Below, piece by piece: positions 42,477 to 59,168 of a DNA stretch of 64,000 bases. Position 1 is the first letter of the stretch. Each line of letters begins with the position of its first letter. The position numbers and the translations under genes are program-made. Under the pieces are notes generated by a model. The model worked only from the letters and a program-made list of their open reading frames with translations, had not been told where the DNA came from and made no database searches. The stretch is from sequence record NC_019526.1; one strand, given 5' to 3'.

Positions 42477-42791
42477 ATGAGTACTAAAGAACTGAATGTA
42501 ACTACCAACACTTATAAGACGTTATGCGGTCGGTTGTTACGTGATTATTACACTGTAGAGATTGAAGAACGCGAATTACCCGAAGATAAACACTATTGGG
42601 AAAGTGGTGTTAGTCCTCTGCTACGGGTAACAACGTCTAAGCATGTTTTCTTTACTTCCCGCATTCATGTTAATAAGCGTGTTGAATTGACTTTCTCTTT
42701 CAGTGGTAGTTATAAAGATCATGAGATCTTGAATGATCGTATCGTTATTAATAAATTTATTCAAATGTATGGTGCGGATTCTTTACTTTAA
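42477..42791 (+). CDS. hypothetical protein
   Basis: Promoter-hairpin-AGGAG cassette. Confidence 0.75.
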   Translation: MSTKELNVTTNTYKTLCGRLLRDYYTVEIEERELPEDKHYWESGVSPLLRVTTSKHVFFTSRIHVNKRVELTFSFSGSYKDHEILNDRIVINKFIQMYGADSLL

Positions 42792-42877
42792 GTACTTGAC
42801 AATTCGATCCAGTACTGTATAATGTATTACATCAAAGGGGATACATAGTGTATCCCTGATATAAAGGAGTAGCGACT

Positions 42878-43237
42878 ATGCGAGCTTTTAACGTTTATAA
42901 GAATGACAAGAAAATTGATGTTGTTTATTATTCCGAAGTAATGACGGCAAAAGAAGTAACCGATTTGCTGAATAGCCGTGGTGAATACAACGGCGAAGTA
43001 AAAGCATTTCGGTCATTGAATAGTGCGAATATTCGCACAGTACTGAAAAATGCTAAAACTGTTTTATTCAATGATGACGAATATTTTAATAAAGATGTTA
43101 CGGGTATTAAAAACCTGGAAGATCTGAAAAGCCTTATTGGTATTAAAGGCAACGTATACAAAGTGGGGGAAGTCGGATCCCGCCATGAATATAAATTAGC
43201 CAATAGTGATTATAAATTTTCAATCCTGGTAATGTAA
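42878..43237 (+). CDS. hypothetical protein
   Basis: Promoter-hairpin-AGGAG cassette. Confidence 0.75.
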   Translation: MRAFNVYKNDKKIDVVYYSEVMTAKEVTDLLNSRGEYNGEVKAFRSLNSANIRTVLKNAKTVLFNDDEYFNKDVTGIKNLEDLKSLIGIKGNVYKVGEVGSRHEYKLANSDYKFSILVM

Positions 43238-43238
43238 T

Positions 43239-43442
43239 ATGAAAGTTTATATTTTGGAAGTGGAAGAATGTAATTCATATTCTTACAGTGGTACACTATC
43301 ACGCGTGGAGGCGGTATTTGCCAGCGAGAAAGAAGCCCACGCCGCTGGGGTTCAAAAAGTAAAAGAAGGCTATGAAGGTTATAGCGTCGATGCTTATGAT
43401 ATTCAGGGCGATCTTTCAGCACTTTTAAAGGAATTAAAATAA
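43239..43442 (+). CDS. hypothetical protein
   Basis: Packed + strand ORF. Confidence 0.7.
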   Translation: MKVYILEVEECNSYSYSGTLSRVEAVFASEKEAHAAGVQKVKEGYEGYSVDAYDIQGDLSALLKELK

Positions 43443-43657
43443 TGGAATATGAATTAATATATCACACTCGGTTATATGTTATTTTCTTTGAAATAACGTT
43501 ATGGGGAGTAAAGGCAACGATTTATAATAAAGACGTTGTCGACGATCAAGAATGGATCGTTGTTGCAGAAGATAAAACGCCTCATGATTCGTTAAGTACT
43601 GATTTTAAATTATGCCGTGAATTATTAAAGAGAATAAGAAAAGAGAATAATATATAA
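43442..43657 (+). CDS. hypothetical protein
   Basis: AAGGA SD, coupled. Confidence 0.7.
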   Translation: MEYELIYHTRLYVIFFEITLWGVKATIYNKDVVDDQEWIVVAEDKTPHDSLSTDFKLCRELLKRIRKENNI

Positions 43658-43690
43658 AACAAAGGGGATCGATTGATCCCCTTTGTTGTT
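43658..43690. terminator. bidirectional intrinsic terminator
   Basis: AACAAAGGGGATC-gatt-GATCCCCTTTGTT. Confidence 0.75.
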
Positions 43691-43849
43691 TCAGTACTGA
43701 ATTAATAATAGATACACTACGGCACCCTATGGGTTAGTGCCTTGTGTCCGGCTTATGTGGTTATTATGCCAGTACTGCGAACATAAGTCAATAGTTGATT
43801 TGTAAAGAAGTGTAAATGCACAGGAAGCATTGTAAGGCGTTAATCTGTT

Positions 43850-43857
43850 GCTGGTGG
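43850..43857 (+). other. Chi site (first of seven co-oriented)
   Basis: GCTGGTGG; also 45898, 50843, 52476, 54780, 56040, 57570. Confidence 0.85.
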
Positions 43858-44164
43858 CTGATAGTATAGAGTAGTGTTTTAGATTGATTGTAGGCCGTTG
43901 TAGGCGTTTATAGATAGTAAAGTACTGATAATGTTTAATGATCCTGGTATGTGCAAATTATTTTAATTTTTTTCGTATTGGGTATTGACGGATTATGTCA
44001 GTACTGGCATAATGTATCACATGAAGCGGCGAGATAGAAAATCATCTCAGTAGCTGGCCAGTAAAGCATACGAAGTCCTGGTGTCGCCTCAAACGGTTTT
44101 AGGTATCAAATAACACGTAACATCTAAACGTTGATGATACTGAAAACTAAAAAGAAAAAAGTAG

Positions 44165-44202
44165 TTGACAAGTACTAACGAGAATGAGATAATCTCTCTC
44201 GT
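44165..44202 (+). promoter_or_regulatory. promoter with operator-like palindrome over -10
   Basis: TTGACA-17-GATAAT; AACGAGA...TCTCGTT inverted repeat. Confidence 0.65.
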
Positions 44203-44246
44203 TGAAACAAACAAACAATCTTAATCAAAACTTAAAGGTGAATAAA

Positions 44247-44747
44247 ATGGCTAAACTGAATTCTGTGATCGTTGCTCTGCTGGCTGGTGATGTTGCTGCT
44301 CTGAATACTTCTTTCGCGTCGGTATCGATGGAAGATATGAAAACTGTTCGTAATAACTTTAACGAGTTTTACTCCAAGTTTAAAGCTGCTAATGAAGCTG
44401 CTGAAGCGGCGGCGAAAGAGCGTAAAGTACAGATCGAAACCGAAACGAAAGAACTGGTAGACGCCCTGGTAACTGCTGGCCTGGATCTGGAAATGGCCGC
44501 CGAAGTCGCCAGCCAGAAAATGGCGGTGAAATATCCCGAACTGGCTCCGAAGTCTGCAACTGGTAAAACCTGGTCGTTTGAAACCGTATTCGTTAACGTT
44601 GACGGTGAAAAACTGGAAATTGGCACCAAAGGCAACAAAGGCAGTATGAAAGCACTGGCGGCGGCACGCGAAGCAATTGCCGCAGGCAAATACAAAGATC
44701 GTGCTGAATGGATCGCCGCTCACGCCTGGACTGAAACCGAAGCGTAA
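44247..44747 (+). CDS. H-NS/StpA-like nucleoid-associated protein (divergent)
   Basis: SMEDM...EAAEAAAKERK...LVTAGLD matches the H-NS oligomerisation-domain pattern; strongly host-optimal, GC-rich codons. Confidence 0.55.
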   Translation: MAKLNSVIVALLAGDVAALNTSFASVSMEDMKTVRNNFNEFYSKFKAANEAAEAAAKERKVQIETETKELVDALVTAGLDLEMAAEVASQKMAVKYPELAPKSATGKTWSFETVFVNVDGEKLEIGTKGNKGSMKALAAAREAIAAGKYKDRAEWIAAHAWTETEA

Positions 44748-44768
44748 TAATTCAGTACTGTAATAATT

Positions 44769-44795
44769 AGCCTCCTGTAATTAGGAGGCTTTTTA
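44769..44795 (+). terminator. intrinsic terminator
   Basis: AGCCTCCT-gtaatt-AGGAGGCT then T run. Confidence 0.8.
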
Positions 44796-44826
44796 TTTTG
44801 TTCAAAAAAATATTTTAATTTATTTT

Positions 44827-45001
44827 TTGAACGGACTTCAAAAATCGGATATAATAATAAAGGGTGTTAATTACAGAGACCCCCATAGTGTTCGCTACGC
44901 TCACATAATGATCTTACTCGTTGCACTCGTAAGATCATTATCCAATCGGCCTTCGGCGATTTCTTTTTGATTTCCTACGGAAACCAAACGAAACCACCAG
45001 C
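44827..45001. other. promoter plus cluster of GNA-triloop hairpins (origin/pas-like)
   Basis: TTGAAC-17-TATAAT; - strand GC[GTA]GC, GT[GCA]AC, CC[GAA]GG, TTTCC[GTA]GGAAA; reverse Chi at 44994. Confidence 0.4.
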
Positions 45002-45397
45002 AAAGGCAGATCCCATTATTTGATTTAGTTAGTACTGCGATTAATTAGTAATTCATTGCACTACATAGCAATCAATTCCTTTTGTAATAGCTCACAGGAC
45101 GCAATAAGACGCGTTTAAATGACTTCCCTATGTAATGCCATTCCTTTTTAATAAGTCCTCTTAAAACGCGTTACAGTGCGTTATATGGCGTTTTTATAAT
45201 ACTCATCATTTCTTTTTCAAAAAGTACTTGCATTAATGATCCAGTACTGCAATAATGTACTCACTGAAACGCAGTAAGCGAAGTAAGTAAATGCAAATAA
45301 GTACTTGACAAAGTGTTGTAGTACTGGCATAATGAATACATCAAAACGAAATAGCAAAGGGATTCAGTACTGAATCCCTGTTAAGGAGAAAAACCAA

Positions 45398-45871
45398 ATG
45401 TTAAAACTTCATAAAGTACTTGATAACGCAGTTGTAACCGACTTTTTCCTGTCTCTTAACAACGAACCGAAAACAGCGAAGGAAATTGTTTTGAGTGGTT
45501 ACATCGCCAGCAAGTCAGAGATCGCACATTTGGAAAGTGCTTTCAAGTCCGGTGATGCATTATACAAAAAAATGCAAAATACCATCGAAGATTTGCAATA
45601 TATCAATTTACGTGATATTGTAGACAATAAATTGGATATTTCAGAAGAAGCACGCGAGAAGCTGGTAAGTAAATTATGTTACCGCTGCCGAACTGCAAAA
45701 TGGAATCGCATTCGTAGTATTATTACTTACGATTTAAGTAATATCGATTCCAAATCAATTCTTGAACGTATGTTATTAAATTTACAAAGCAATGAGTGGT
45801 TTTATACCGCCGCTCAATCTCATAGCGAAGAAATTGCATATATTCGTGATTATGTAATTTACAGCAAGTAA
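45398..45871 (+). CDS. hypothetical protein
   Basis: Promoter-hairpin-AGGAG cassette. Confidence 0.8.
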   Translation: MLKLHKVLDNAVVTDFFLSLNNEPKTAKEIVLSGYIASKSEIAHLESAFKSGDALYKKMQNTIEDLQYINLRDIVDNKLDISEEAREKLVSKLCYRCRTAKWNRIRSIITYDLSNIDSKSILERMLLNLQSNEWFYTAAQSHSEEIAYIRDYVIYSK

Positions 45872-45944
45872 TTAATAATTGATTAGCCATCATTAAAGCT
45901 GGTGGCTAATAGAATATTAATAACCTGTTAGGAGAATAATCTTT

Positions 45945-46214
45945 ATGAAAGGTATTAGTACTTTAATTGATAAAAACACTCATGTAAGACGTTCAATGAT
46001 TGCCGTATCACTGGCTAAAGTTGTTGCAAGTGGTTATCTGGTTTTTGTTGTAGATGGTAAATTGCAAGAGCGTTCAATTGCATTTAGTACTAAAGAAAAT
46101 TGCCGTTATATTGTATACAAGAAAGAAGCATACAAGATAGATTTACCAGCGAAACCGATCTCCGGTGGTTACAATGTTGAAAGTCTATATGAAAGGCCAC
46201 CGTATACTGCGTAG
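45945..46214 (+). CDS. hypothetical protein
   Basis: AGGAG SD. Confidence 0.75.
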   Translation: MKGISTLIDKNTHVRRSMIAVSLAKVVASGYLVFVVDGKLQERSIAFSTKENCRYIVYKKEAYKIDLPAKPISGGYNVESLYERPPYTA

Positions 46215-46291
46215 AATCGATTTTGAGCGGCTTTAATGAAATATAGGGTATCAGTACTGATACCCGTTTAAAACAGTGTAGGAGTGATTCT

Positions 46292-46462
46292 GTGAAGCGT
46301 GAACAAGCTTTATTGACGCCTGAAGAGGCAAGACGCTATGAAATGTTTTCAAACCAGGAAACGATCAAAGCGGCACAATATAACCCGGTTGCTTGTACAG
46401 TACAAAGAAAGAATTTTGTACTAAATGAAGTAGAAAGTATTATCAAATCAAATAAGGAGTAA
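46292..46462 (+). CDS. hypothetical protein (56 aa)
   Basis: AGGAG SD, GTG start. Confidence 0.5.
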   Translation: MKREQALLTPEEARRYEMFSNQETIKAAQYNPVACTVQRKNFVLNEVESIIKSNKE

Positions 46463-46468
46463 CAAGCT

Positions 46469-46741
46469 ATGCAAAATAACCGTCCAATGATCCGCAACAT
46501 GCTTTTCGTATTCCAGAAAAAAGTTAATGTAACTTCGGTAAATGGTGAACGTAAATTAAATGCAGCATTCGCCAAATATACCCAAAGCAAAAACATCCAT
46601 TACTTTTATCTTACTCTGAATGAGTTTAATGATCTGGTAAAAGAAATGTTTGTCAGTACTGAAATTGTTGCACCTGTAAGTACTGACACCATTTTGAAAG
46701 AGTGGGAAAGTTTTTACAAAAGTTCTGTTGTAATCGCTTGA
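46469..46741 (+). CDS. hypothetical protein
   Basis: AGGAG SD. Confidence 0.75.
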   Translation: MQNNRPMIRNMLFVFQKKVNVTSVNGERKLNAAFAKYTQSKNIHYFYLTLNEFNDLVKEMFVSTEIVAPVSTDTILKEWESFYKSSVVIA

Positions 46742-46795
46742 CAACATAATCCAGTACTGGCATAATAACTACATAGACCACAAAGGAGAAACATA

Positions 46796-46975
46796 ATGGA
46801 AACTGTAATTGCTACTACCAAAATCAATGGACTGGATAATGAAGTTTCATTGATCCATGACGGTAACGAATATGTTGTGTCATATGGTATCTATAAAACC
46901 TATCATGACGCTATCAATGAAGCTTTTGAGGATTATATGAAAGCAATTGAAATTGCTTATGATGATTATCGTTGA
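46796..46975 (+). CDS. small acidic protein (59 aa)
   Basis: Own promoter, AGGAG SD. Confidence 0.7.
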   Translation: METVIATTKINGLDNEVSLIHDGNEYVVSYGIYKTYHDAINEAFEDYMKAIEIAYDDYR

Positions 46976-47058
46976 AAGTACTTGCTTTAATCATTCAGTA
47001 CTGTATAATGTATTACATCAAAGGGAATGAATGATTCATTCCCACATAACCAGGAGTA

Positions 47059-47418
47059 ATGACTATGTTTGATAAAGTTTTATTTTCTGATAACACCTCT
47101 GAAACCGAGATCCCGGAAGCGGTAAAAGCTTTTGCTCAATTAGTTGCCCAGCGTCAAACTGATAATTACGACGGGCCTTATTCTTTTCTTACTGAGATTA
47201 GTAAAGGCAAAAAGTTTATTAAACTTATTCGCCGCGAGAAGTGGAAAGATAACGGACAATTAACAGGCGGATCGGTATTTGCCTTTATTGATCCCGATGG
47301 TAACATTTACAAATCAGCGACAGCTAAAGCACCAGCTAAAGGCATTCGCGGAAATGTTAACATCAACGGCGGCGGTGATGCAATCGGGCGTGATGGTTAT
47401 ATTCGTTACTTTCGTTAA
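47059..47418 (+). CDS. hypothetical phage protein
   Basis: GKKFIKL...SVFAFID...GNIYK.A..KAPAKG motif. Confidence 0.8.
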   Translation: MTMFDKVLFSDNTSETEIPEAVKAFAQLVAQRQTDNYDGPYSFLTEISKGKKFIKLIRREKWKDNGQLTGGSVFAFIDPDGNIYKSATAKAPAKGIRGNVNINGGGDAIGRDGYIRYFR

Positions 47419-47507
47419 TTGACAAATCTTTACAAATCCAGGGGTTGACTTCGGTCGCCCCTTTTGTTATTATATATTCATACCACAGAGCAAGTGGTTT
47501 AGCCCAC

Positions 47508-47625
47508 AGGGTGCCGAGATGTATCTATAGTTTAATGATTTTAAGTACTGAAAAATAATTATAAAAAGTACTTGCTAGACGTGAATTCTTTTAAGAATTC
47601 ACTTGTATTTGTGATTCAGTACTGC
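47508..47625 (+). repeat. 118-bp direct repeat, copy 1
   Basis: Identical to 57395-57513 except a 1-nt indel. Confidence 0.9.
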
Positions 47626-47661
47626 TATTATATATTCATACCAATTAAGGAGATTATCCAA

Positions 47662-47820
47662 ATGAATACACAATATGTGCCGGTGATGAATATCACTATA
47701 GGAAATGGAAAAGGTATGCATCGATTCAGTACTACAAAGAGTTATACTCAGCGTACATTAGAATCATGTGCAATTACTAAATGGCAAATCAAACATTACT
47801 TCACTACGGACAAGAAATAA
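47662..47820 (+). CDS. hypothetical protein (52 aa)
   Basis: AGGAG SD; the track start lies in the promoter. Confidence 0.65.
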   Translation: MNTQYVPVMNITIGNGKGMHRFSTTKSYTQRTLESCAITKWQIKHYFTTDKK

Positions 47821-47932
47821 TGATTGTAAAAGTATTGACAACGATAATTCAGTACTGTATTATAACTGGTGTAGCGTTCGTGTTAGCAGTTGCTATAGTG
47901 TTTAGTACTGTAATTGTATTGGGGAACATATC

Positions 47933-48238
47933 ATGATTAAAAATATTGAAGCATTCGATAAAGCATATCTTTACACCAGTACTTTTCGGAATAGCGATGG
48001 CGATCCGGTTGAATTTAAAAATGTAGTACTGATCCGGCCTGGTTTTGATATTATTCATATCTGGAATTCATGGAATCAAGCGGCGGGCAATCGCTATACT
48101 ATTGATAAAGAAATTTCAATAGAAGAAGCGTTAAAACTTCCATCATTGCCGGATCGTTTATCCCTGGCTAGTCGTGTGGAACTGGTGGGTGATACCGCAC
48201 AATATATCACGCATGAGTATGAATTTAAGTACTTATAA
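47933..48238 (+). CDS. hypothetical protein
   Basis: GGGG SD. Confidence 0.7.
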   Translation: MIKNIEAFDKAYLYTSTFRNSDGDPVEFKNVVLIRPGFDIIHIWNSWNQAAGNRYTIDKEISIEEALKLPSLPDRLSLASRVELVGDTAQYITHEYEFKYL

Positions 48239-48324
48239 GTGTTGACAACATAATTCAGTACTGTATAATGTATTACATCAAAGGGGATACATAGTGTATC
48301 CCTGAATTAACAGGAGTAACCCAT

Positions 48325-48573
48325 ATGTCTAGTATCGTTATCAATGAAACCTTATTATCTGTTACTTATGACAATGACAGTGTTTTTCCGGGTAAAGATT
48401 ATGGGGACGAAATTCCCGTAAAAGTTGAACTCGATCAAAGTGTCGGTAATGCCGACGATATTAAACGCACTATGGTGGTTAAAATTGGCGATATCACTTT
48501 ATTGCCCATTGATATTGATTATATCAAGTTTATGATTGATCGTGCAAATACCATTGCCGAAACCTTCAAATAA
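48325..48573 (+). CDS. hypothetical acidic protein
   Basis: Promoter-hairpin-AGGAG cassette. Confidence 0.75.
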   Translation: MSSIVINETLLSVTYDNDSVFPGKDYGDEIPVKVELDQSVGNADDIKRTMVVKIGDITLLPIDIDYIKFMIDRANTIAETFK

Positions 48574-48656
48574 GTACTTGACAACTGGTTTCAGTACTGT
48601 ATAATGTTTATCAAAGGGGATACATAGTGTATCCCTGATTTAAAGGAGATTCTAAA

Positions 48657-48845
48657 ATGGCAGTAGTATACGGTTATATCAGCAACTATGATTTGACTTT
48701 CCGGGAAGTCGGTACTGAATTAGGTGCAAAGAATGCAGCAACGCGAAACGGCTCGACCCGCGTAGGATATCGCAGTAGTATTAATAATATGTATATTGAA
48801 ACGCATATCCGCAACGATAAAAAGGGTAAATGGGAAAAAGTGTAA
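48657..48845 (+). CDS. hypothetical protein
   Basis: Promoter-hairpin-AGGAG cassette. Confidence 0.75.
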   Translation: MAVVYGYISNYDLTFREVGTELGAKNAATRNGSTRVGYRSSINNMYIETHIRNDKKGKWEKV

Positions 48846-49235
48846 TCTAATTCCATTTACAAATCTTTACAAAACCAGTACTTGATTTAATTATTGAGTA
48901 CTGGTATTATATATTCATTGGCAGATAAGCCGCAGCCCACAGGGTGCCGAGGTGTATCTATAGTTTATTGAATTGAAGTACAGAAAAATATTTCTTGCAT
49001 AATTCATTTCTTATGTTATAATAGTAATCACATAAATTAATTGGAGTGAACAAAAATGTTATTAGATTGGCTCAATACTTTATCCCCTGCTGCTGGCCGA
49101 CGCTGGGCTATCGGTTCGTCGGTTGCCATCGTTGTAGGCGTCATTGTACTTTTAGTGATGATTTTCTAAAAAGTACTTGCTTTAATGATCCAGTACTGTA
49201 TAATGTACTTATACCAAATAACAGGAGTAAAACCG

Positions 49236-49553
49236 ATGAAAGATGTAACTTTACCAGTAGTTCAAACTAACTTTGAAAACCAATTCCTGGCCGAAGTATT
49301 CAAGATTGATAATGGCGTTGTATCAATCAATTACGGTTTCAATAGCGGCGGTTATGAAAAATTCATTTATTTCGTTACTGCCGATGGTGGATGCCTGGCA
49401 ATTGATACGGTACTGAATGAATTCAGTAAAGTAGATTTTAATGATGATAATGATCCTCAGTGGTATATTGTCGGCTATGACGTGAACTATGAAGATGAAG
49501 ATCTTTATGATGATCATACTAATCAAAAAATTGAATCCGCTTATGGGGAATAA
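49236..49553 (+). CDS. acidic hypothetical phage protein
   Basis: AGGAG SD; DPQW...VNYED...IESAYG motif. Confidence 0.75.
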   Translation: MKDVTLPVVQTNFENQFLAEVFKIDNGVVSINYGFNSGGYEKFIYFVTADGGCLAIDTVLNEFSKVDFNDDNDPQWYIVGYDVNYEDEDLYDDHTNQKIESAYGE

Positions 49554-49853
49554 AAATGATCATCGTACTATCAGAGAAAGAAAAGAAATTAATTCTTTCA
49601 GTACTGAAAGAATATCCCAGAAATATGCGGGAGCCGTTTGAAACAAATGGTGAATTCGAAGAGCATTTAAACGATATCGATTTATTGATATCCAAGATTG
49701 AATCACAATAGTGATGTACTGTAAAACGTCCTGTAATCGATTATGGGACGTTTTAAGGAATAGCACTATGATTTATTCAGTACTGTAAAAAAACGCTTGA
49801 AAATTGATTCCAGTACTGTATAGCTGCATTACTGTTTAATGTGGGGTATTAAA

Positions 49854-50069
49854 ATGAAATATGTTATGGTAGATGAAATTACTAGCACGAAACCCAGTGA
49901 TGATTATAACAAATGGCTTGCCCGTAGCAATAAATGTATTATTCCGCACGATGACCGCGTATATCATTGTTATGAATGCGGGGAGATTATACCAAATGTA
50001 CTGGATCATTCAATCTTTACATATGATGATCTTAATTACGCTCATTCAAGATGCCTTGATAAAAAATAG
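49854..50069 (+). CDS. small Cys/His protein
   Basis: CYEC...HSRC. Confidence 0.65.
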   Translation: MKYVMVDEITSTKPSDDYNKWLARSNKCIIPHDDRVYHCYECGEIIPNVLDHSIFTYDDLNYAHSRCLDKK

Positions 50070-50144
50070 TTGACAGTATCATATCAGTACTGTATAATGC
50101 TTTACATAGGAAAATTATTCTCCCCATTATCAGGAGTAAAGAAT

Positions 50145-50372
50145 ATGTTTTACATCGGTACTGTTAAAAAAAATTCAAATGTAATTGAAGCATCATTGAT
50201 TTGTACTAACAATGAAGTGGCTGGCTATGATTATGCTCAAGAACGATTCATGAAACACTATACCGGTGATGATTCAGTGTCATTCGATTTTGAACGTATC
50301 GGTGATGGTGTTACAATTATGAAATTTGAAGATCTCCCTGAAATCGATTTTGATTTTGTCGTTACACTGTAA
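50145..50372 (+). CDS. small acidic protein
   Basis: AGGAG SD. Confidence 0.7.
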   Translation: MFYIGTVKKNSNVIEASLICTNNEVAGYDYAQERFMKHYTGDDSVSFDFERIGDGVTIMKFEDLPEIDFDFVVTL

Positions 50373-50471
50373 AAAAAGTACTTGCATAATTCTTTCAGTA
50401 CTGTATACTGTACTTATACCAAACAAAAGCAAATGGAATCAGTACTGATTCCCTGTAAAGGAGATAGACCA

Positions 50472-50723
50472 ATGTCAGATCGTATCACTCGCAAAATGGT
50501 AGCAGATAAAGTTGCTGGGCTGAATCTTGCTATTGACCGTCGTGGATTGCCTGAAAAATATCAGGTAGTACTGGAAGATGGCAAATTCAATATTGAATTA
50601 CAGCCGTCTCATGTTTATACTAAACCAACGACAGTACAAGGGAATTTAAGTACACGTGAAGCATATCTTTACCTCAAAGGTATGTTTGAGATCCTTCTCA
50701 ATAATGTACCATATAAAGATTAA
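50472..50723 (+). CDS. hypothetical protein
   Basis: Promoter-hairpin-AGGAG cassette. Confidence 0.75.
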   Translation: MSDRITRKMVADKVAGLNLAIDRRGLPEKYQVVLEDGKFNIELQPSHVYTKPTTVQGNLSTREAYLYLKGMFEILLNNVPYKD

Positions 50724-50726
50724 AGA

Positions 50727-50757
50727 AAAAGGGGAGACAATGAGTCTCCCTTTTTTG
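50727..50757. terminator. bidirectional intrinsic terminator
   Basis: GGGAGAC-aatga-GTCTCCC flanked by A and T runs. Confidence 0.75.
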
Positions 50758-50949
50758 TATTCAGTACTAAATTATATAGATACATTTATGCACCCTGTGG
50801 GTTAGTAGCTTGTTCTGCTTTATGTAGTAATTATATGATAAAGCTGGTGGCTTGTCAACACTTATTTTAAAATAAAAAGTACTGAATAGTACTTGCAAAA
50901 AGTATTCAGTACTGTATAATGTTTGTATTGAGATTAAGGAGTTCTTACT

Positions 50950-51507
50950 ATGTTAATCAAAATGTATCACGGTTCTAATAATTTTGATCATCGCTGGGGA
51001 TATCTGGGTGGAAAACCTGGCAATTTTCATATGGGTTTTGGACTATATCTAACTAACTCTTATCGCTGGGCTGATAATTATGGGCGACGTCATTATGAGT
51101 TAGATTTAGATATTTGTAGTACTGGTGCCGCACATAATGTATGGATTCCTACTAAACACTTTATGGAATTCATAAGAGTATATTGTACTAAAAAGTTTTA
51201 TACAATGTGCTGTAAAGAATTTAAAGACCGTGAATCTTTGAATGTAGAACGCGTTGAATTGCTTATTATCAATATGGAAAGGCACGTTACGAAAATCGCT
51301 AAACCATTTGCTGAATTCGTCGCTGCCTGGGGTTGTACGCATAGCATTGAAATATCCGGTAACTATGGTGGTGTTTGCGTGCGGCTTTATGATTTCAGTA
51401 TTATAAAGAATTGTATCATAAGCCAGGAAACGCAGGATTTTTATTATCCAGATGAATTGACAAGATATCCTCAAAAAACTTGTATTAATGATTCAGTACT
51501 GATATAA
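50950..51507 (+). CDS. ADP-ribosyltransferase-fold protein (H-Y type)
   Basis: MYHGS ... MGFGLYLT ... WADNYG. Confidence 0.55.
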   Translation: MLIKMYHGSNNFDHRWGYLGGKPGNFHMGFGLYLTNSYRWADNYGRRHYELDLDICSTGAAHNVWIPTKHFMEFIRVYCTKKFYTMCCKEFKDRESLNVERVELLIINMERHVTKIAKPFAEFVAAWGCTHSIEISGNYGGVCVRLYDFSIIKNCIISQETQDFYYPDELTRYPQKTCINDSVLI

Positions 51508-51752
51508 TGAATTAAATTAATCAGGAGGAATTATCTTAAATGAATAACCGTCAATTGATGATCGATGCATCTCGTTTTCGTTCAAAAGAAGAAAAGAGAA
51601 GTTGCATTAAATGGGTTTTGTCAACTTTCATTATTGGATTACTTATTGTTGCTTTTGTTTATAGTTAGTACTTGACAATATAATCCAGTACTGTATAATG
51701 TTTATCAAAGGGAATGAATTATTCATTCCCGATTAATCAAAGGAGTTTTGCC

Positions 51753-51977
51753 ATGATCTATATTATCAAAGTATCCCCGACCGTAGGTAAATCAGAAGTT
51801 GTAGCTGTTATCACTTCCCTGGAAGCGAAAGATCTTCATACCCCGTTTAATGTATGGGTGGAGGATAATTTCGGACAATTCAGTACTGCTGAATATATCG
51901 AACAATTCGCTGTCCCGGACACTGGTAAAATCAAAGTGGATCGTGTCCTGGATTTTGATAACAGTAATTACTTTTAA
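51753..51977 (+). CDS. hypothetical protein
   Basis: Promoter-hairpin-AGGAG cassette. Confidence 0.7.
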   Translation: MIYIIKVSPTVGKSEVVAVITSLEAKDLHTPFNVWVEDNFGQFSTAEYIEQFAVPDTGKIKVDRVLDFDNSNYF

Positions 51978-52063
51978 AAACGTTTGACAACTGATTTCAG
52001 TACTGTATAATGTTTATCAAAGGGAATGAATTATTCATTCCCGATTAATCAAAGGGGTTTATC

Positions 52064-52210
52064 ATGAAAGAGTATATCTTTGAAGTAACTTTCACATTTG
52101 GCCCGCACCAACTGATCCGGTCTTCTGGCTACAACCGCGAACAAGCATTCAGCAACCTTCGCCGTATGTACCCCAATGTCGTGACCTGGGTCAAGTGTGA
52201 AGAAGCTTAA
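52064..52210 (+). CDS. hypothetical protein (48 aa)
   Basis: Duplicate cassette, AGGGG SD. Confidence 0.65.
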   Translation: MKEYIFEVTFTFGPHQLIRSSGYNREQAFSNLRRMYPNVVTWVKCEEA

Positions 52211-52290
52211 AATAATTAGTCAGTACTATTGACAACGGGTGATAGTACTGCTATAATTATTTTAACTTATACGGAATGGAGTTAAAACAA

Positions 52291-52527
52291 ATGTTCAGTG
52301 TCAGCAAACAAGGCGACAAATTTCTGGTTCAATACCATCATTTTGATCTGGTATACACTCAGCCAGATTGTGTATTCAGTACTCAGGAAGGTGCCGAAAA
52401 GCACAAAAAAGCCTTGATCGAAAATAGCAACAGTGGTACATTAGATTTCATCCAACAGTACTGGAATGAATCTAAGCTGGTGGACGGTTATTCCAACACA
52501 GTTTATTATGTAGGTATCACTGATTAA
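52291..52527 (+). CDS. hypothetical protein
   Basis: GGAG SD. Confidence 0.7.
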   Translation: MFSVSKQGDKFLVQYHHFDLVYTQPDCVFSTQEGAEKHKKALIENSNSGTLDFIQQYWNESKLVDGYSNTVYYVGITD

Positions 52528-52629
52528 TCGGGAGTACTGTTAATGTATATGCCAATTATCATACCGTTAGCAGTACTGTTAATCGCCGCCGTTATCTGCG
52601 AACAATATCATTTGTTAGGAATGTAAACT

Positions 52630-52800
52630 ATGATTCAATGTGAATTGTCAGTACTGATCACGCTGTTCTATATGTTGGGGCAAAAGAAACAAGATATTTC
52701 TGGTGATAATGCATTATTGTATCAATCATTAGACCAATGGCAACGATCTGAATTAAGCAATGCATGGGCGAAAGGTTACAACGATAGTACTGCAAAATAA
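52630..52800 (+). CDS. hypothetical protein (56 aa)
   Basis: AGGA SD. Confidence 0.55.
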   Translation: MIQCELSVLITLFYMLGQKKQDISGDNALLYQSLDQWQRSELSNAWAKGYNDSTAK

Positions 52801-52987
52801 TTTAAAAAAGGGGTTGACTTACGCCAGCCCTTTTGTTATCATTAGTACATAGCAAGAACAATGCTCAAGCCCACAGGGTGCGGAGGTGTATCTATAGTTT
52901 ATGTTGGTCTGAATCATTAATTTTCTTGACAATTGGTTTAGTACTGGATATAATAGCCGCCATTGAATACAGGAGGATTTTAAAAAA

Positions 52988-53254
52988 ATGGCCTATCATA
53001 CACCACATAGACATTTCATTGATAAACGCGGTATGGCTTTTAAAGCAATGAGTGACAATCGTAACACACAAATGTACTTTAAAGATATGACGTTAGAAGA
53101 AGCTATTGAAGCTGTAAGGAATGATCGTAAGCTTTCCAAGAAAGTTGCATCAGTACTTAATGCTTTTTGGTTTGAACGTACTACCAACAAAGAATACAAA
53201 GAAAAGATGATTGCACTTGGTAAAGTAGTAAGAGAAGAAAAATTATATCTTTAA
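52988..53254 (+). CDS. hypothetical basic protein
   Basis: AGGAGG SD. Confidence 0.75.
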   Translation: MAYHTPHRHFIDKRGMAFKAMSDNRNTQMYFKDMTLEEAIEAVRNDRKLSKKVASVLNAFWFERTTNKEYKEKMIALGKVVREEKLYL

Positions 53255-53505
53255 GTACTTGACTATGTGATTCAGTACTGCTATTATATATTCATACCAA
53301 TTAAGGAGATAGACCAAATGAAACAAGCTAAATTTAATTCAGAAATTAAAGCAGCAAAAGCACACAAAGTACAGTTAGTAGTACTGGTTATTGTATCAAT
53401 CTTTTTGCTGTGCAACATCGGCTAAAATAATTATTACAGTACTATTGACAACCAACGATAGTACTGGTATAATTACTTTACCAAATAAAAAAGGAGTAAC
53501 CAAAA

Positions 53506-53781
53506 ATGCGGATTAAACTTACCAGTGATGAGATTCATTCAGTACTGACTACCAATATGCAGGACTGGAAAAAGTACGCTGATATCGAAGAAGTCCAGGA
53601 ACTCAATGATGATTTGAGTGTAGATGAAATTATCACTATTTGCTCATCTCAATTCTTTGATGATATCAATGATGAAGAGCAAGATGTATTTGATATCATG
53701 GAAAAACATTTTATTGCGTATGATGTTTTCCCGTATACTCGCCAGGCTTATATTCTTATTCACAACATTTATAACAAATAA
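53506..53781 (+). CDS. highly acidic small protein
   Basis: About 20 D/E vs 7 K/R in 91 aa; AGGAG SD. Confidence 0.75.
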   Translation: MRIKLTSDEIHSVLTTNMQDWKKYADIEEVQELNDDLSVDEIITICSSQFFDDINDEEQDVFDIMEKHFIAYDVFPYTRQAYILIHNIYNK

Positions 53782-53793
53782 GGAATAATAATC

Positions 53794-54159
53794 ATGGAAA
53801 AAGAATTTAAAATCAAATACAATATCAGTACCGATGGCGGTTTTGAAGTACCAGAAGAAGATCAAGAACGTCTTAATGATGTTATTATGATTGACATTTC
53901 AAATAAAATCATTCAAGGCTACCGCGAAGGTGAATTGTGTGAATCGTTGATGGATCAATTCGATGAAGTGGAAACGTTTTATCGTGGCTGGTGGAGTATC
54001 GAAGAAGTTCACAAAGTACACGAATACCGTGTATTCTGGATTAATGGCGTTAATGATATCGAAGATATCATTGTAAAAGAAAGTAGTGAATCCGCCGCCA
54101 TTCAGTACTTTAAAGATCACTACCCCAACAAACGTTATCACCATTTAGAAAAAATTTAA
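53794..54159 (+). CDS. acidic hypothetical protein
   Basis: AAGGA SD. Confidence 0.75.
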   Translation: MEKEFKIKYNISTDGGFEVPEEDQERLNDVIMIDISNKIIQGYREGELCESLMDQFDEVETFYRGWWSIEEVHKVHEYRVFWINGVNDIEDIIVKESSESAAIQYFKDHYPNKRYHHLEKI

Positions 54160-54246
54160 AAAGTAATTGACAACATAATCCAGTACTGATATATTAATAC
54201 GCATAGGGGCAAACAACTTGCCCCACTAAACAAAAGGAACTACCAA

Positions 54247-54603
54247 ATGATTACTAAATTCTACGCTACTCGTGAACAGGCTCGGATCGTCGCTCGTGAA
54301 GAAGGCGAAACCTTCAAAGATATGGGTAAAGATTCCCCTGCTGGTCAACGCTGGGCAGTACTGTTCCGCGAGGTCAAAGACCTGGTAGAAAACGCTAAAG
54401 CCGTTGAAATGAACGTTCCCACCAAAGAAGATAAAGAACTGACTGATGCCCTCGCTGCTGCATTCTCCGCGATGGATAAAGCCGCAGCGGTAGTACTGAA
54501 AGTACCGGAATTTGTTACCAGAAAAGTGCATTCAGTACTACAAAATAAATTCAACGGTAAACAGGTTCAAGTGTTTACTAAACGTAAAATTCCGGTCATG
54601 TAA
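54247..54603 (+). CDS. hypothetical phage protein with host-optimal codons
   Basis: FYATREQAR...KDMG...GQRWAV. Confidence 0.8.
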   Translation: MITKFYATREQARIVAREEGETFKDMGKDSPAGQRWAVLFREVKDLVENAKAVEMNVPTKEDKELTDALAAAFSAMDKAAAVVLKVPEFVTRKVHSVLQNKFNGKQVQVFTKRKIPVM

Positions 54604-54707
54604 AATCTGACTATTACAGTACTAACAAAGGGGCTTCAATGCCCCTTTAAACGTCCTGTAAGCCATTCTAAGAGGTTTTACATGAAAAGGTACAACTACA
54701 CAAAGGA

Positions 54708-54929
54708 GTGATGAAAGTTCATTATAATGCCCCGCAACGCATTATAGATAGAGCCATTGAACTAGCCAATCAATACCTAGCTGGTGGATTAACTCCCAGG
54801 AAGTTAAGCAACGGGAAGTTATATGTAATCAACGTTGATACTAATAATCGTATAGTAATCAAAGGTGAAAGCATATCACTGTATGAACATCAGCAGTATA
54901 ACAAGAAAGTAAAAAATATTAGTAGATAA
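54708..54929 (+). CDS. hypothetical protein (possible ParE/RelE-like small fold, unverified)
   Basis: AGGAG SD. Confidence 0.6.
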   Translation: MMKVHYNAPQRIIDRAIELANQYLAGGLTPRKLSNGKLYVINVDTNNRIVIKGESISLYEHQQYNKKVKNISR

Positions 54930-55008
54930 GTGTTGACAACTGATTTCAGTACTGCCATAATGTATACATACAAGGCAATACCGCCTAATAACATAGGAGT
55001 AACTGAAA

Positions 55009-55431
55009 ATGAAAAAATCCACTAAAATTATCTTAGGTGTATTTGTTGTTCCGGCAGTAGCCTTTTTTACTTGTGCTATGATTTTTGGTGATGCTTCTCG
55101 GGTTGCCGCAAAAATCGAAAAAGAAAAACAAGTCCAGGTGGAAGTCAAGAAAGAAGAAAAGAAAAATTATAACACTGTATGGGAAGCAATTTGCCATACC
55201 AGTAATGGTAAAAGGATCTCCATCCTTACAGCGATGAATAATGGAAAATCAATCGTCGGAAACGAATATATGGAAGTTACTTCCAGTACTGGTAAAGAAT
55301 TTGTAATGACGAACTATAATAACAATAACGTTGCAATTGTTACACAAGATTTTAAAGGTAATGCAGTACTTGAATATCATACGGAATATGAAGTAATATT
55401 TGCAAAATGCACATTTGAATGGGGTGCATAA
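55009..55431 (+). CDS. membrane-anchored/secreted protein
   Basis: N-terminal hydrophobic helix; two Cys in the C-terminal domain. Confidence 0.75.
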   Translation: MKKSTKIILGVFVVPAVAFFTCAMIFGDASRVAAKIEKEKQVQVEVKKEEKKNYNTVWEAICHTSNGKRISILTAMNNGKSIVGNEYMEVTSSTGKEFVMTNYNNNNVAIVTQDFKGNAVLEYHTEYEVIFAKCTFEWGA

Positions 55432-55614
55432 AAATAAACATAATAAACAAAAAAGGGGGTTGACACAGGTCAGCCCTTTTGCTATTATTAATATCAAGAA
55501 AACAAGCTAACCCACAGGGTGCATAAATGTATCTATAATTTATTAAAGAATTTTAGTACTTGACAACGTAGTACAGCAGTACTAAAATATCTACATACAA
55601 AGGAGATTACCAAA

Positions 55615-56199
55615 ATGAACAAACATCTTAAAGTACTGAATAAATGTAAATCCAATACCGAAATGTTACTGTACTGTTACAAAAATTTAATTAAACTCGG
55701 GAGAGGTTCATCCAGAACAGTATTTTTGTTAACAAAAAACAAAGTACTGAAAGTTGCTCATAACCATATTGGCAACCAACAGAATACAGCAGAAATCACT
55801 GCATGGTTGTATATTGATTATGACCGCTATTATAATAAACGCTTTTTCGCTAAAGTGTTCCCTGATATGTCGCATTTTAAAGATGTATACATAGTACAGG
55901 AGTACTGCGACAATATCAGTACTAAAGAAGCGAAGCCATACATTGAACATTACTTGACACCTAGCACTATTGAAAATGAGCGTGCTAAACGCTTCCACAC
56001 GGCGTTAAGAGATGTAGACAATACCCTTAACTATAAAACGCTGGTGGACTTAAACGTGGGCAATATAGGCCGTTCTGTAAGGGGTGCAATAAAACTCCGT
56101 GATTATGGATTATCTGAACATATTGCTAAACAGTATAGAGAAGCCCGCGACCAGTACCACCAACTCAAAAGTATTAGTAACATAAGTATTGATTTATAA
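55615..56199 (+). CDS. minimal protein kinase
   Basis: LGRGSSRTVF, VLKVA, QNTAE, IVQEYC, DLNVGNIG, IKLRDYGL. Confidence 0.8.
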   Translation: MNKHLKVLNKCKSNTEMLLYCYKNLIKLGRGSSRTVFLLTKNKVLKVAHNHIGNQQNTAEITAWLYIDYDRYYNKRFFAKVFPDMSHFKDVYIVQEYCDNISTKEAKPYIEHYLTPSTIENERAKRFHTALRDVDNTLNYKTLVDLNVGNIGRSVRGAIKLRDYGLSEHIAKQYREARDQYHQLKSISNISIDL

Positions 56200-56264
56200 T
56201 TTCAGTACTGCTATAGTACTTTCACAGGGGAGATAATCTCCCCAATCACAAAGGAGATTTTACC

Positions 56265-56627
56265 ATGAGTACTAAACCATTTGTAACCACTCGTTCTAAT
56301 CTGACTGAGATCTATGTACATGGTGGATATGAGGAAACGTATGTCACTGGTATTATGGTAGAATTCAATCAGGGTTATCGGTTTATGTTGGTAGATTCAG
56401 AAATCTATCATACACAACAAGATAAACATGGTTATGTCAATAAGTACTCCACCGATGAAGTACTGAAACGCCTGGATAACAAAATTAAACAAATTCAAAA
56501 ACATCTTGACAACGGCGGAAAACTTAATCATTTACTTTGGGATAGCTTAGATCCCTGCTACGGTTCCGATGCATATGGTAAAAGCCGTGACACTGCAATG
56601 AAAGTACTTAAAGATTATTTCTTTTAA
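56265..56627 (+). CDS. hypothetical protein
   Basis: Promoter-hairpin-AGGAG cassette. Confidence 0.75.
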   Translation: MSTKPFVTTRSNLTEIYVHGGYEETYVTGIMVEFNQGYRFMLVDSEIYHTQQDKHGYVNKYSTDEVLKRLDNKIKQIQKHLDNGGKLNHLLWDSLDPCYGSDAYGKSRDTAMKVLKDYFF

Positions 56628-56707
56628 GTATTGACAAGTAATTCCAGTACTGGCATAATGTATTTCAAGGAGGTAATAACACCTCCTACCTTCAAGGAGT
56701 AGTGACT

Positions 56708-56944
56708 ATGAATACTAAAGAAATGCTTTGTGAGTTCGCCAGTAACAATCTTGGCAACGCCGCGTTCATTGATGGTTTTAATTATGTAGCAACTCGTGAT
56801 CAAGAAGGTAAAGTATTCGTTAAAGATCGTATGGGCTTTTCTATCCAGGTTCAATCCGGTACTGCAAGCCATATCGACGGCATGAATGTATGGGCTGCTA
56901 CTATCCCCGGTGATGGAACATATCATTTCCGTATCGTAAAATAA
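56708..56944 (+). CDS. hypothetical protein
   Basis: Promoter-hairpin-AGGAG cassette. Confidence 0.75.
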   Translation: MNTKEMLCEFASNNLGNAAFIDGFNYVATRDQEGKVFVKDRMGFSIQVQSGTASHIDGMNVWAATIPGDGTYHFRIVK

Positions 56945-57033
56945 TTTAAAAAGTACTGGACAATACAATCCAGTACTGTATAATGTTTTGCATAGGGAGA
57001 GATAATCTCTCCCACTAAAGGAGAATACCGAAA

Positions 57034-57315
57034 ATGATTACTGGTCACATTACTAACTATGCAAAACGCCGCGATGTAGAAATAGAAGTACTGAAAGCAG
57101 GCGAAGTTGACGATGACGCTCAGGTATGGTTCTACACCGCAGACAATGATTGTGAACCAGTACTGATGTACCTGATTAATAATGATGGTTCTCTTACTTA
57201 TCGTAGCAAACTGATGAAGTCCCTGGAAGATATGCCAGCACATATCAATAATAAAGAAGTACTGAAACGCGTAATCTGCTACATCTCAGACCAGCACAAA
57301 GCGGATATGATGTAA
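57034..57315 (+). CDS. hypothetical protein
   Basis: Promoter-hairpin-AGGAG cassette. Confidence 0.75.
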   Translation: MITGHITNYAKRRDVEIEVLKAGEVDDDAQVWFYTADNDCEPVLMYLINNDGSLTYRSKLMKSLEDMPAHINNKEVLKRVICYISDQHKADMM

Positions 57316-57394
57316 TCTTTACAAATATGGGGGTTGACTAATGTCAGCCCTTTTGGTATTATATATTCAATCCAGCGAAATGGTCTAACCCTCA

Positions 57395-57513
57395 AGGGTG
57401 CCGAGATGTATCTATAGTTTAATGATTTTGAAGTACTGAAAAATAATTATAAAAAGTACTTGCTAGACGTGAATTCTTTTAAGAATTCACTTGTATTTGT
57501 GATTCAGTACTGC
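57395..57513 (+). repeat. 118-bp direct repeat, copy 2
   Basis: Matches 47508-47625. Confidence 0.9.
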
Positions 57514-57597
57514 CATAATATATCCATACAAGGGAAACATAGTGTTTCCCGATAATCCACAGCAATAGTGCTGGTGGATGAACCAGGAGTAATAACC

Positions 57598-57894
57598 ATG
57601 CAAGACAAATCAATTCATGTTCAAGTAGTTTCAAGCCGTGGCTATGACGATGTAGTACTGGATATCATGGTTAAAGATCTGCGGGACTATGCAATCATTG
57701 CACGTCATATCATGGTTAACTCCATTTGTATCAGTACTGGTGCTGATATGGAAGAAAACCGCTTACATATAGAAGAACATCTATACAAAGCACGCATGAA
57801 TGACAGCAGTGTATTCATCATTGAAGGTGCCGAGGGTAAAGAGTATACTGTATACCTTCGCCAGTACCAGGAAGTAGAAAAAGAAGAAGATTAA
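57598..57894 (+). CDS. acidic hypothetical protein
   Basis: AGGAG SD; the track start lies in a Chi-containing 5' hairpin. Confidence 0.75.
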   Translation: MQDKSIHVQVVSSRGYDDVVLDIMVKDLRDYAIIARHIMVNSICISTGADMEENRLHIEEHLYKARMNDSSVFIIEGAEGKEYTVYLRQYQEVEKEED

Positions 57895-57985
57895 TTTATA
57901 AAAAGTACTTGCTTTAATAGTTCAGTACTGTATACTGTTTATCAAGGGGAAGCAATAGTGCCTCCCCACTCATAGGAGATACACC

Positions 57986-58384
57986 ATGTTTACTATCACT
58001 TCTCGACAGGATGTTCTGTACGTTGCTAAAACTTTTGGTCTGGAAGCACTCGATCATATCATTCGCAACAGTACAATGAATGCTGATGCAAATGGGATTA
58101 TCATTGATACTCGGGCATGGGCCGCCAATGAAGTCATTGCCATCGAGCATGTTAACGATGGTAACAATGTCTATGAAGTGGATGCATGTTTCAATGCTGT
58201 TAATGTAGCAGGTATGTATATCACTGGTATTGATGATATCACTATCATCCGCTCCGGTATGGGTAACTTCTCCATGCCTTTACGTTCAGCAATGGAAAGA
58301 AAAGAGATCAGTACAGAACAATGTGCAAATATAATCAATGAGATTACCGCACGTAATGAAGCTGCTGCTATCCTTTACCCGTAG
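57986..58384 (+). CDS. hypothetical protein
   Basis: Promoter-hairpin-AGGAG cassette. Confidence 0.75.
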   Translation: MFTITSRQDVLYVAKTFGLEALDHIIRNSTMNADANGIIIDTRAWAANEVIAIEHVNDGNNVYEVDACFNAVNVAGMYITGIDDITIIRSGMGNFSMPLRSAMERKEISTEQCANIINEITARNEAAAILYP

Positions 58385-58404
58385 TAGTTCAGTACAGTAC
58401 TGTA

Positions 58405-58437
58405 AGCCCATAGGATAAACCCTGTGGGCTTTTTCTT
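58405..58437 (+). terminator. intrinsic terminator closing the early module
   Basis: AGCCCATAGG-ataaac-CCTGTGGGCT then T run. Confidence 0.75.
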
Positions 58438-58686
58438 TATGGGTAATATGATTGGGTAGGTTATGGTGTAAGTACTGTCAGAATTGATTACAGGAGGATA
58501 GCGTAAAAATTGATTAATTGATTTCAGTACTGAACTGTTATTGAGAAAAAATATTAGTCAAAAAATAATTGACTTAGAAAATATTTAAACCAATACCTTA
58601 TACTGTATGAAATAGTTTCGGACTGTGATTATATATTTGACTAAGTAAAGTGGTATTAGGCTTAGCACTTTTATATAGTATTACAG

Positions 58687-58787
58687 TACTGAACAATTTA
58701 TATCATTCTGTGCACTATTCTGTACTGGAACAATTTATATCATTCTGTGCACTATTCTGTACTGAACAATTTATACTATTCTGTACT
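58687..58787 (+). repeat. about 2.5 tandem copies of a 36-37 bp unit
   Basis: TACTG(G)AACAATTTATATCATTCTGTGCACTATTCTG. Confidence 0.85.
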
Positions 58788-59168
58788 ACACTAATTGAAA
58801 TTAATGGTTATAAAACCCTTGCCTCTTCAATAAAAGTGTGCTATGATGTAATTAATATGTGTGTTTCTATTATGTGAAATTATAGGTACAAAATGAAAAC
58901 CAGACCGTATCACACTGAAATAAAAGAAGCTTTTTATAATGGTAATCCATTAAGAAGTATTGAATTAGTTTTGCTTCGTAATTTAGGTACACCATCGCAA
59001 GAAGAGTGTGTTCAAGAATATATAAATCGTTTGATATAATGTAAAGTACAAAGCAAAAGGCATTTTTATCATTACTTAAATCGTAATACATAAAGAATTA
59101 GATGATATTTAATGCTGTACTAATATCTTGACTCTTTTTTTCTACAATTGTATATAACAGGAATAGTA

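Follow-up and report, generated by a model that had tools for sequence, protein, structure and literature searches.

A strand-biased cluster of Chi sites in the inferred terminal repeat of the Klebsiella jumbo phage RaK2, with counterparts in other jumbo phages of enterobacteria

Chi arrays in described phages

A linear double-stranded end poses the same problem to many phages, namely exposure to the host enzyme RecBCD, which the phage proteins lambda Gam, T7 gp5.9, P22 Abc2 and T4 gp2 meet by blocking RecBCD or capping the end. The octamer Chi (5'-GCTGGTGG-3') may offer another answer, in the form of a DNA signal that redirects the enzyme. Having entered DNA at a double-stranded end, RecBCD responds to Chi only when it reaches the octamer from its 3' side. 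The active Chi is that of the strand whose 3' terminus is at the point of entry, and after recognition the enzyme spares this strand and loads RecA onto it (PMC12315714). Terminal arrays of Chi have been argued only recently to represent exploitation of RecBCD, and only for temperate P1-like and lambdoid phages. This report concerns a cluster of Chi sites in a 64-kb stretch of DNA (the window), positions 186,001-250,000 of the genome record of the Klebsiella jumbo phage vB_KleM_RaK2 (JQ513383 / NC_019526, 345,809 bp); window positions are record positions minus 186,000. In a megablast search, window positions 43000-59500 matched this phage over their full length at 99.9% identity.

Phage P1, like P7 and D6, carries host Chi far above expectation in or near the terminal repeats of its packaged linear DNA, for the proposed purpose of cyclisation by RecBCD and RecA through the repeats (bioRxiv 10.1101/2021.07.08.451572; PMC12315714), and RaK2 resembles it in both respects. 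P1 is temperate and packages by the headful from a pac site, which spreads its ends over 20-40 kb, and Chi is plentiful on either strand, the top strand having 31 of the 50 sites. By contrast, the RaK2-like phages are virulent and belong to the jumbo myoviruses; the boundaries of their repeats are fixed, the density of Chi falls sharply there, and the strand bias is 8:1. Rec dependence is experimental in P1 and a prediction in RaK2. In the lambdoid phage LLS, 20 of 23 Chi sites are in the active orientation, with a cluster at the right end, and growth is better with RecBCD; about 60 relatives likewise have Chi sites clustered at the right end in the active orientation (Zheng et al. 2025, PMC12315714). 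RaK2 shares with this class the cluster at the right end and the orientation bias (eight of nine sites), and both can be read as using host RecBCD rather than inhibiting it, although the growth gain of LLS is a measured one. The LLS class has cohesive ends, no terminal repeat, and neither recombination genes nor RecBCD inhibitors (its defining correlate), whereas RaK2 encodes its own UvsX, UvsW, gp46/47 and endonuclease VII and so breaks the rule that phages with their own Rec genes have few Chi sites. RaK2 does not belong to the LLS class without a Rec module, though it may work likewise. The concept is thus already known from P1 and from Chi-rich lambdoid phages, and the array of RaK2 is apparently unreported.

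RaK2 is a virulent jumbo myovirus with a distant relation to T4. Its recombination genes form a T4-type set, with endonuclease VII as gp49 and with Dda in addition to the proteins named above; a homologue of the UvsY-type recombinase loader was not found by its describers, who left the genome ends undefined (PMC3622015). Both RaK2 and K64-1 were deposited as arbitrary circular permutations, so that the RaK2 record opens at an arbitrary position. According to older biochemical work, the RecBCD enzyme of Klebsiella recognises the Chi of Escherichia coli. Klebsiella pneumoniae is among the enteric bacteria with more than 300 Chi sites per Mbp (bioRxiv 10.1101/2021.07.08.451572).

The Chi cluster and the probable terminal repeat of RaK2, compared with relatives

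Eleven exact copies of Chi were found on the two strands of the window, and nine of these lie between 43850 and 57577, eight on the plus strand and one on the minus strand (Table 1). A preliminary reading made from the sequence alone (the sequence-only reading) had listed seven plus-strand sites and one minus-strand site in this interval and two sites elsewhere in the window. All of its coordinates are exact, but its total of seven co-oriented sites is one short of the real count of eight, because the site at 53987 had been missed.

The cluster coincides with a region that can be aligned to a mapped genome end. In Muenster, a close relative, PhageTerm defined a direct terminal repeat (DTR) of 20,030 bp (PMC8407769). 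Positions 1-20030 of Muenster are collinear with window positions 38815-58662 of RaK2 at 87-96% identity, and both boundaries are preserved: the two extremities of the Muenster record adjoin each other in RaK2 exactly at 38814|38815, and Muenster position 20030 maps to window position 58662. On this alignment, the RaK2 repeat very probably occupies the same interval; the deposited record contains one copy of it, and virion DNA is expected to have one at either end. The repeat has a G+C content of 35.9%, compared to 30.5% outside it, and contains all nine clustered Chi sites. The sequence-only reading had predicted a DNA end near 58.4-59 kb, bearing terminal repeats, and the inferred right boundary agrees with this prediction, lying approximately 1.1 kb beyond the rightmost clustered Chi, in a region homologous to the PhageTerm-defined repeat of Muenster. 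Termini at the left only, which would have spoken against that prediction, are not what the alignment indicates: the repeat would stand at both ends, and its right boundary would then be the right end.

At the right end the strand with the 3' terminus is the plus strand, and therefore RecBCD coming in from the right would meet the eight plus-strand sites in their active orientation, as the sequence-only reading had reasoned; the rule that it applied is the published one (PMC12315714). These eight sites point towards 58662, the inferred right end. The single minus-strand site, at 44994, faces the inferred left end at 38815 and has the orientation that is active for entry there.

Chi is strongly concentrated in the repeat on the scale of the whole genome. 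RaK2 possesses 18 copies in its 345,809 bp, nine of which are in the repeat (5.7% of the genome; binomial P = 2e-7), at a density 16-fold that found elsewhere; the even distribution that the sequence-only reading had named as contrary evidence was not observed. K64-1 possesses 16 copies, with nine in the interval homologous to the RaK2 repeat. The nine copies of RaK2 that are outside the repeat (seven on the plus strand, two on the minus strand) also exceed the approximately 1.4 expected for 326 kb. One of them, at 35857 on the plus strand, lies 3 kb outside the left boundary and is the next site that would be met after the whole repeat; it is kept in OU509535 and, judging by its matching position, apparently in K64-1.

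Chance does not explain the excess, as was indicated by shuffled sequences, Markov models and octamers of the same composition alike. In shuffles that preserve dinucleotides, the two strands together yielded 0.27 sites per 64 kb and never more than 3, versus the 11 observed. When Markov models (orders 0-4) were fitted to the repeat of 19.8 kb, they predicted 0.09-0.72 plus-strand sites, versus eight observed, and the probability of at least eight plus-strand sites in the repeat ranged from 6e-14 to 1e-6 across these orders. Of 168 octamers composed of five G, one C and two T, 154 have no copy, ten have one, three have two, and Chi has eight; these counts and the Markov models led us to reject base composition as the cause of the excess. 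Among 13,309 observed octamers, Chi ranked 18th to 31st in over-representation, and the words above it (among the top 12 for each model) are all overlapping pieces of an AGTACT palindrome or of promoter elements. A link between AGTACT and Chi was considered and rejected, AGTACT being part of the promoters. The possibility that Chi is carried within a longer repeated element was also rejected: the flanks of the nine sites are unrelated, except for ...GGCT common to three.

The contexts of the sites are varied. Five of the nine clustered sites are intergenic, although 61% of the repeat interval is coding, and, as the sequence-only reading had noted of several sites, two are in hairpins (45898 and 57570) and one is in a promoter spacer (50843). 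The four coding sites are spread over all three reading frames, and thus no single dipeptide can explain them. The 3' arm of the hairpin at 57570, the clustered site closest to the right end, is Chi itself, and the 5' arm is a degenerate reverse Chi (-8.2 kcal/mol, z = -2.8). The spacer is that of a perfect TTGACA-17-TATAAT promoter on the minus strand (50830-50858), which opposes all annotated genes of the repeat and may drive an antisense transcript across open reading frame (ORF) 345.

Table 1. Inferred repeat, boundary words and exact Chi octamers in the RaK2 window (window coordinates; sites kept in relatives are noted where they are listed singly).
Feature	Position	Strand	Context
Inferred direct terminal repeat	38815-58662	+	19,848 bp; record positions 224,815-244,662
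Left boundary word CTAAGTCCGTTTATAAAGT	38811-38829	+	14 of 19 positions match the right boundary word
Right boundary word CTTAGCACTTTTATATAGT	58660-58678	+	14 of 19 positions match the left boundary word
Chi	43850-43857	+	Intergenic; right repeat boundary 14.8 kb away; kept in Muenster, OU509535 and K64-1
Chi	44994-45001	-	Intergenic; sole opposite-oriented site in the cluster; left repeat boundary 6.2 kb away; kept in Muenster, OU509535 and K64-1
Chi	45898-45905	+	Intergenic; 3' arm of a local hairpin (-8.0 kcal/mol, z = -2.6)
Chi	50843-50850	+	Intergenic; in the spacer (17 nt) of a perfect sigma-70-type promoter that points leftward (50858-50830)
Chi	52476-52483	+	Within ORF348; counterpart word in Muenster is GCTGCTGG
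Chi	53987-53994	+	Within ORF352; absent from the sequence-only list
Chi	54780-54787	+	Within ORF354
Chi	56040-56047	+	Within ORF356 (protein kinase)
Chi	57570-57577	+	Intergenic; ORF360 starts 28 nt downstream; right repeat boundary 1,085 bp away
Chi outside cluster	8483		Rest of window
Chi outside cluster	35857-35864	+	Rest of window

Among the nearest relatives the clustered sites are almost all conserved: nine of nine in OU509535, eight of nine in Muenster (52476 is the only one not common to the two phages), and apparently all nine in K64-1, judged by the order and spacing of its Chi positions. More diverged jumbo phages with enterobacterial hosts provide the more informative comparison. 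When a 16.5-kb segment from the RaK2 repeat (window positions 43000-59500) was used as a megablast query, about 1% of it aligned to fENko-Kae01 and to Munch and less than 1% to TH47, and CBB was absent among the nucleotide matches of this query. The K. aerogenes phage fENko-Kae01 has a repeat at 1-19736, defined by PhageTerm (PMC11218385), with 14 Chi sites inside it (12 plus, two minus) and two in the next 30 kb. The Salmonella phage Munch has a 21,296-bp repeat, also defined by PhageTerm (PMC8273493), with 13 Chi sites inside (11 plus, two minus) and two in the flank that was fetched. The repeat of the Pectobacterium phage CBB, at 1-22456, was established by doubled coverage and pulsed-field gel electrophoresis (PMC5259590), and has nine Chi sites inside (seven plus, two minus) and three in the fetched flank. 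The E. coli phage TH47 (Asteriusvirus), with unmapped boundaries, has ten Chi sites within 16.6 kb, eight of them co-oriented, and none in the other 33 kb. Pooled over four lineages with one genome each, the orientation is 34:7 (P = 3e-5 versus 1:1; P = 0.003 versus the expectation from strand composition). Three hallmarks, namely Chi excess, terminal clustering and strand bias, are therefore present in the sequences of RaK2 and its relatives.

The arrangement of the sites is also similar, and at least one site does not appear to have been inherited in place. In every phage with mapped termini the nearest plus-strand Chi is 0.4-1.4 kb from the right end, and the left part of each repeat contains one or two minus-strand sites. 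A Chi site is found inside the kinase gene in RaK2 (56040), but just after the same gene in Munch and fENko-Kae01; this difference in position relative to the only recognisably common gene indicates that this site, at least, is not an inheritance in place. In fENko-Kae01, Munch and TH47, a minus-strand site is one half of a perfect 20-nt double-Chi palindrome, CCACCAGC-N4-GCTGGTGG, located at 484-503 in both fENko-Kae01 and Munch (approximately 0.5 kb from the mapped left end) and at 30374-30393 of the stretch fetched for TH47. The RaK2 hairpin at 57555-57579, which contains the 57570 Chi, looks like a degenerate version of this palindrome.

The Pseudomonas relative PA5oct differs. It is like RaK2 in having a long exact terminal repeat that contains small early genes with host-type promoters, as do the first-step-transfer DNA of T5 and the host-takeover module of SPO1, and we know of no oriented Chi array reported for the repeats of T5, SPO1 or PA5oct. 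The termini of PA5oct are fixed, with the repeat at 1-39080, and its repeat genes are transcribed early according to RNA-seq (PMC7318152). No copy of GCTGGTGG was found in the 50 kb searched (positions 1-50000), which indicates that the octamer goes with enterobacterial hosts and not with the repeat as such. The PA5oct repeat might have been expected to contain an excess of a Chi matched to its host; this expectation was abandoned, as the proposed Pseudomonas Chi, GCTGGCGC, has only one copy in the repeat. Either the strategy is not clade-wide or GCTGGCGC is not the relevant octamer.

Possible functions of the array

It is highly likely that the array is under selection for reasons related to RecBCD. 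More specifically, the sites probably constitute a selected polar array at which RecBCD coming from the right end is stopped and RecA is loaded onto a strand homologous to the other copy of the repeat; that recombination, rather than mere protection, is the outcome is the uncertain step. After injection, the right end would be accessible to RecBCD moving leftward, which would meet the first Chi at 1.1 kb and the last at 14.8 kb and would nearly always recognise one of them before the repeat is lost (approximately 94% of the time, with eight sites at a probability of 0.3 each). From that point the strand that ends 3' would no longer be destroyed by RecBCD, and RecA would be loaded onto it. The RecA-coated 3' tail would be homologous to the opposite-end copy of the repeat, whether in its own genome or in that of a sibling, and strand invasion would circularise or concatenate the genome, or prime rightward synthesis into the body of the genome. 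Such recombination would predict that the sites are confined to the repeat, since recognition of a Chi beyond it, on the left, would produce a tail that has no partner in a single infection.

RaK2 could, alternatively, use the array as a shield only, stopping RecBCD from degrading the entering genome and limiting the supply of degradation fragments to spacer acquisition by clustered, regularly interspaced short palindromic repeat (CRISPR) loci, with UvsX and gp46/47 recombining the repeats and RecA loading irrelevant. Chi limits both RecBCD degradation and CRISPR spacer acquisition, and the short distance from the right end to the nearest Chi in all mapped relatives suits a shield as well. The T4-type recombination set of RaK2 (PMC3622015) is likewise consistent with this explanation. 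We consider it unlikely, because Chi sites beyond the repeat would serve a shield equally, yet their density falls 16-fold at the boundaries, with only the plus-strand site at 35857 on the inner side.

A role in repair during replication or packaging, in which RecBCD would act on ends that arise inside the repeat (from collapsed rightward forks or abortive terminase cuts) and not on the ends of the infecting genome, seems decidedly improbable. The plus orientation is also the active one where a fork moving rightward leaves a one-ended break, the Chi sites outside the repeat are on the plus strand in seven of nine cases, and the point of RecBCD entry into lambda DNA is the cos end opened by terminase during packaging (PMC12315714). 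Forks, however, predict sites along the whole 346-kb genome and not confinement to 5.7% of it, and terminase cuts at the boundaries would, by their geometry, send RecBCD away from the array or into packaged DNA. Scarcely credible is the proposal that the sites have no RecBCD role at all, being instead binding sites for some factor, parts of regulatory hairpins or promoters, products of the higher G+C content of the repeat, or relics in a genome with capped ends: the sites in hairpins and in the promoter spacer, the G+C content of the repeat relative to the rest of the window, and the short words that are more over-represented than Chi all fit it, but the flanks vary from site to site, the coding sites occupy three frames, octamers of identical composition reach no more than two copies, the exact host Chi recurs in four diverged lineages with enterobacterial hosts and is missing from the Pseudomonas relative, and the octamer is known to act only with RecBCD (PMC12315714). 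Repeat confinement, recurrence across lineages and absence from the Pseudomonas phage argue against both of these last two explanations.

Several considerations weigh against a polar array that recruits RecBCD and RecA for recombination. The termini of RaK2 are placed by homology, from what PhageTerm predicted for a relative with approximately 94% identity. Conservation of position within Alcyoneusvirus was dropped as evidence of selection, as the eight of nine sites in common with Muenster barely exceed the 5.5 or so expected at 94% identity and add little. The lack of enrichment of GCTGGCGC in the PA5oct repeat is a further point of this kind. Data on rec dependence in this clade were not found in the literature searched, which excluded most subscription journals. 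RaK2 has recombination proteins of its own, and lambdoid phages with their own Rec genes are mostly without Chi (PMC12315714), so that it is not evident why the host pathway would be needed. A protein like gp2 of T4, if it capped the ends, might hide them from RecBCD altogether, and if the left end is the first to enter the cell, the main array points towards the last end to be exposed. Proteins of these protective kinds were sought in 49 of the RaK2 proteins, the remaining 485 or so being outside the scan: for the 39 proteins of the repeat, no Gam-, Abc2- or gp5.9-like family was present among the 25 of 33 matched PHROGs families that were listed or among all 8 Pfam matches, and no gp2-like end protector was present among ten proteins around the gp4 homologue according to PHROGs.

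The proposal of a RecA-loading array can be extended, although only tentatively, to the timing of infection. The array may mark the end that is exposed first (the right end leading) and recruit RecBCD and RecA before the phage UvsX is made, so that recombination-dependent replication or circularisation would start from the terminal repeat as a conserved part of the infection programme of RaK2-like jumbo phages in enterobacteria. Such a programme would fit the apparent lack of a UvsY-type loader, and it would avoid the use of RecBCD inhibitors, which are sensed by some host defences. In fENko-Kae01, Munch and TH47 the double-Chi palindrome would guard the left end as well, and two inward-facing 3' tails could then be formed that are complementary across almost the whole repeat.

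In the same literature, no prior report linking Chi to the terminal repeats of jumbo phages was found. The occurrence of one signature in four genera of virulent jumbo phages, which have genomes of approximately 350 kb, a recombinase of their own and an exact 20-kb repeat, extends the idea of Chi arrays to a very different phage biology and casts doubt on the proposed rule by which an abundance of Chi makes up for absent phage Rec genes. It also provides a predictor, from sequence only, of the physical ends of jumbo-phage assemblies that were deposited as arbitrary circular permutations, such as those of RaK2 and K64-1. Its predictions regarding rec-mutant hosts and the polarity of injection bear on phages that are considered for therapy against Klebsiella.

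Genes and other sequence elements of the repeat

The repeat begins with approximately 1.3 kb of non-coding DNA, followed by 39 small genes on the plus strand (ORFs from 40114 to 58384). Their products have Pfam matches to a ParE-like toxin domain, an H-NS N-terminal-like domain, Pkinase and domains of unknown function, and nearly all of their PHROG matches are of unknown function; the annotation of Muenster adds YafQ-like and YeeU-like proteins in this region. On the plus strand of the repeat there are 22 promoter-like matches that score 11-12 of 12 against the sigma-70 consensus.

One class of promoter was found only in the repeat. It consists of AGTACTTGACA-N8-CAGTACTG followed directly by TATAAT, and ten sites with up to two mismatches are present between 41113 and 56978 (for example, 41479-41505, 42791-42817, 48573-48599 and 51667-51693), versus zero expected. 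The -35 and -10 elements of these promoters are enclosed by two AGTACT palindromes, set 20 bp apart, which look like an operator pair for a regulator of early promoters. The window contains 289 copies of AGTACT (146 of them in the repeat) and 102 copies of CAGTACTG (61 in the repeat).

Five matches to the E. coli Fur-box consensus, each with three mismatches, are located in the left 2.2 kb of the repeat, versus 0.13 expected by chance: 39598-39616, 39890-39908, 40116-40134, and two at 40950-40974. Three of the five are in the non-coding first 1.3 kb. These Fur-box-like sequences could confer iron-responsive control on the first promoters, or they could titrate Fur.

The boundary words of the repeat, CTAAGTCCGTTTATAAAGT at the left and CTTAGCACTTTTATATAGT at the right, are suggestive of a shared terminase cut-site motif but no more than suggestive, and the boundaries of fENko-Kae01 and Munch look unlike them. 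Just outside the right boundary, at 58684-58790, there are approximately 2.5 tandem copies of a unit of about 38 bp (..tactgaacaatttatatcattctgtgcactattctg..), which may be relevant to recognition by terminase.

Two hairpins are each present in two identical copies within the repeat, one at 42838-42856 and 48284-48302, the other at 47581-47602 and 57469-57490; they stand just after promoters or in intergenic segments. Segments of approximately 150-220 bp are also duplicated within the repeat.

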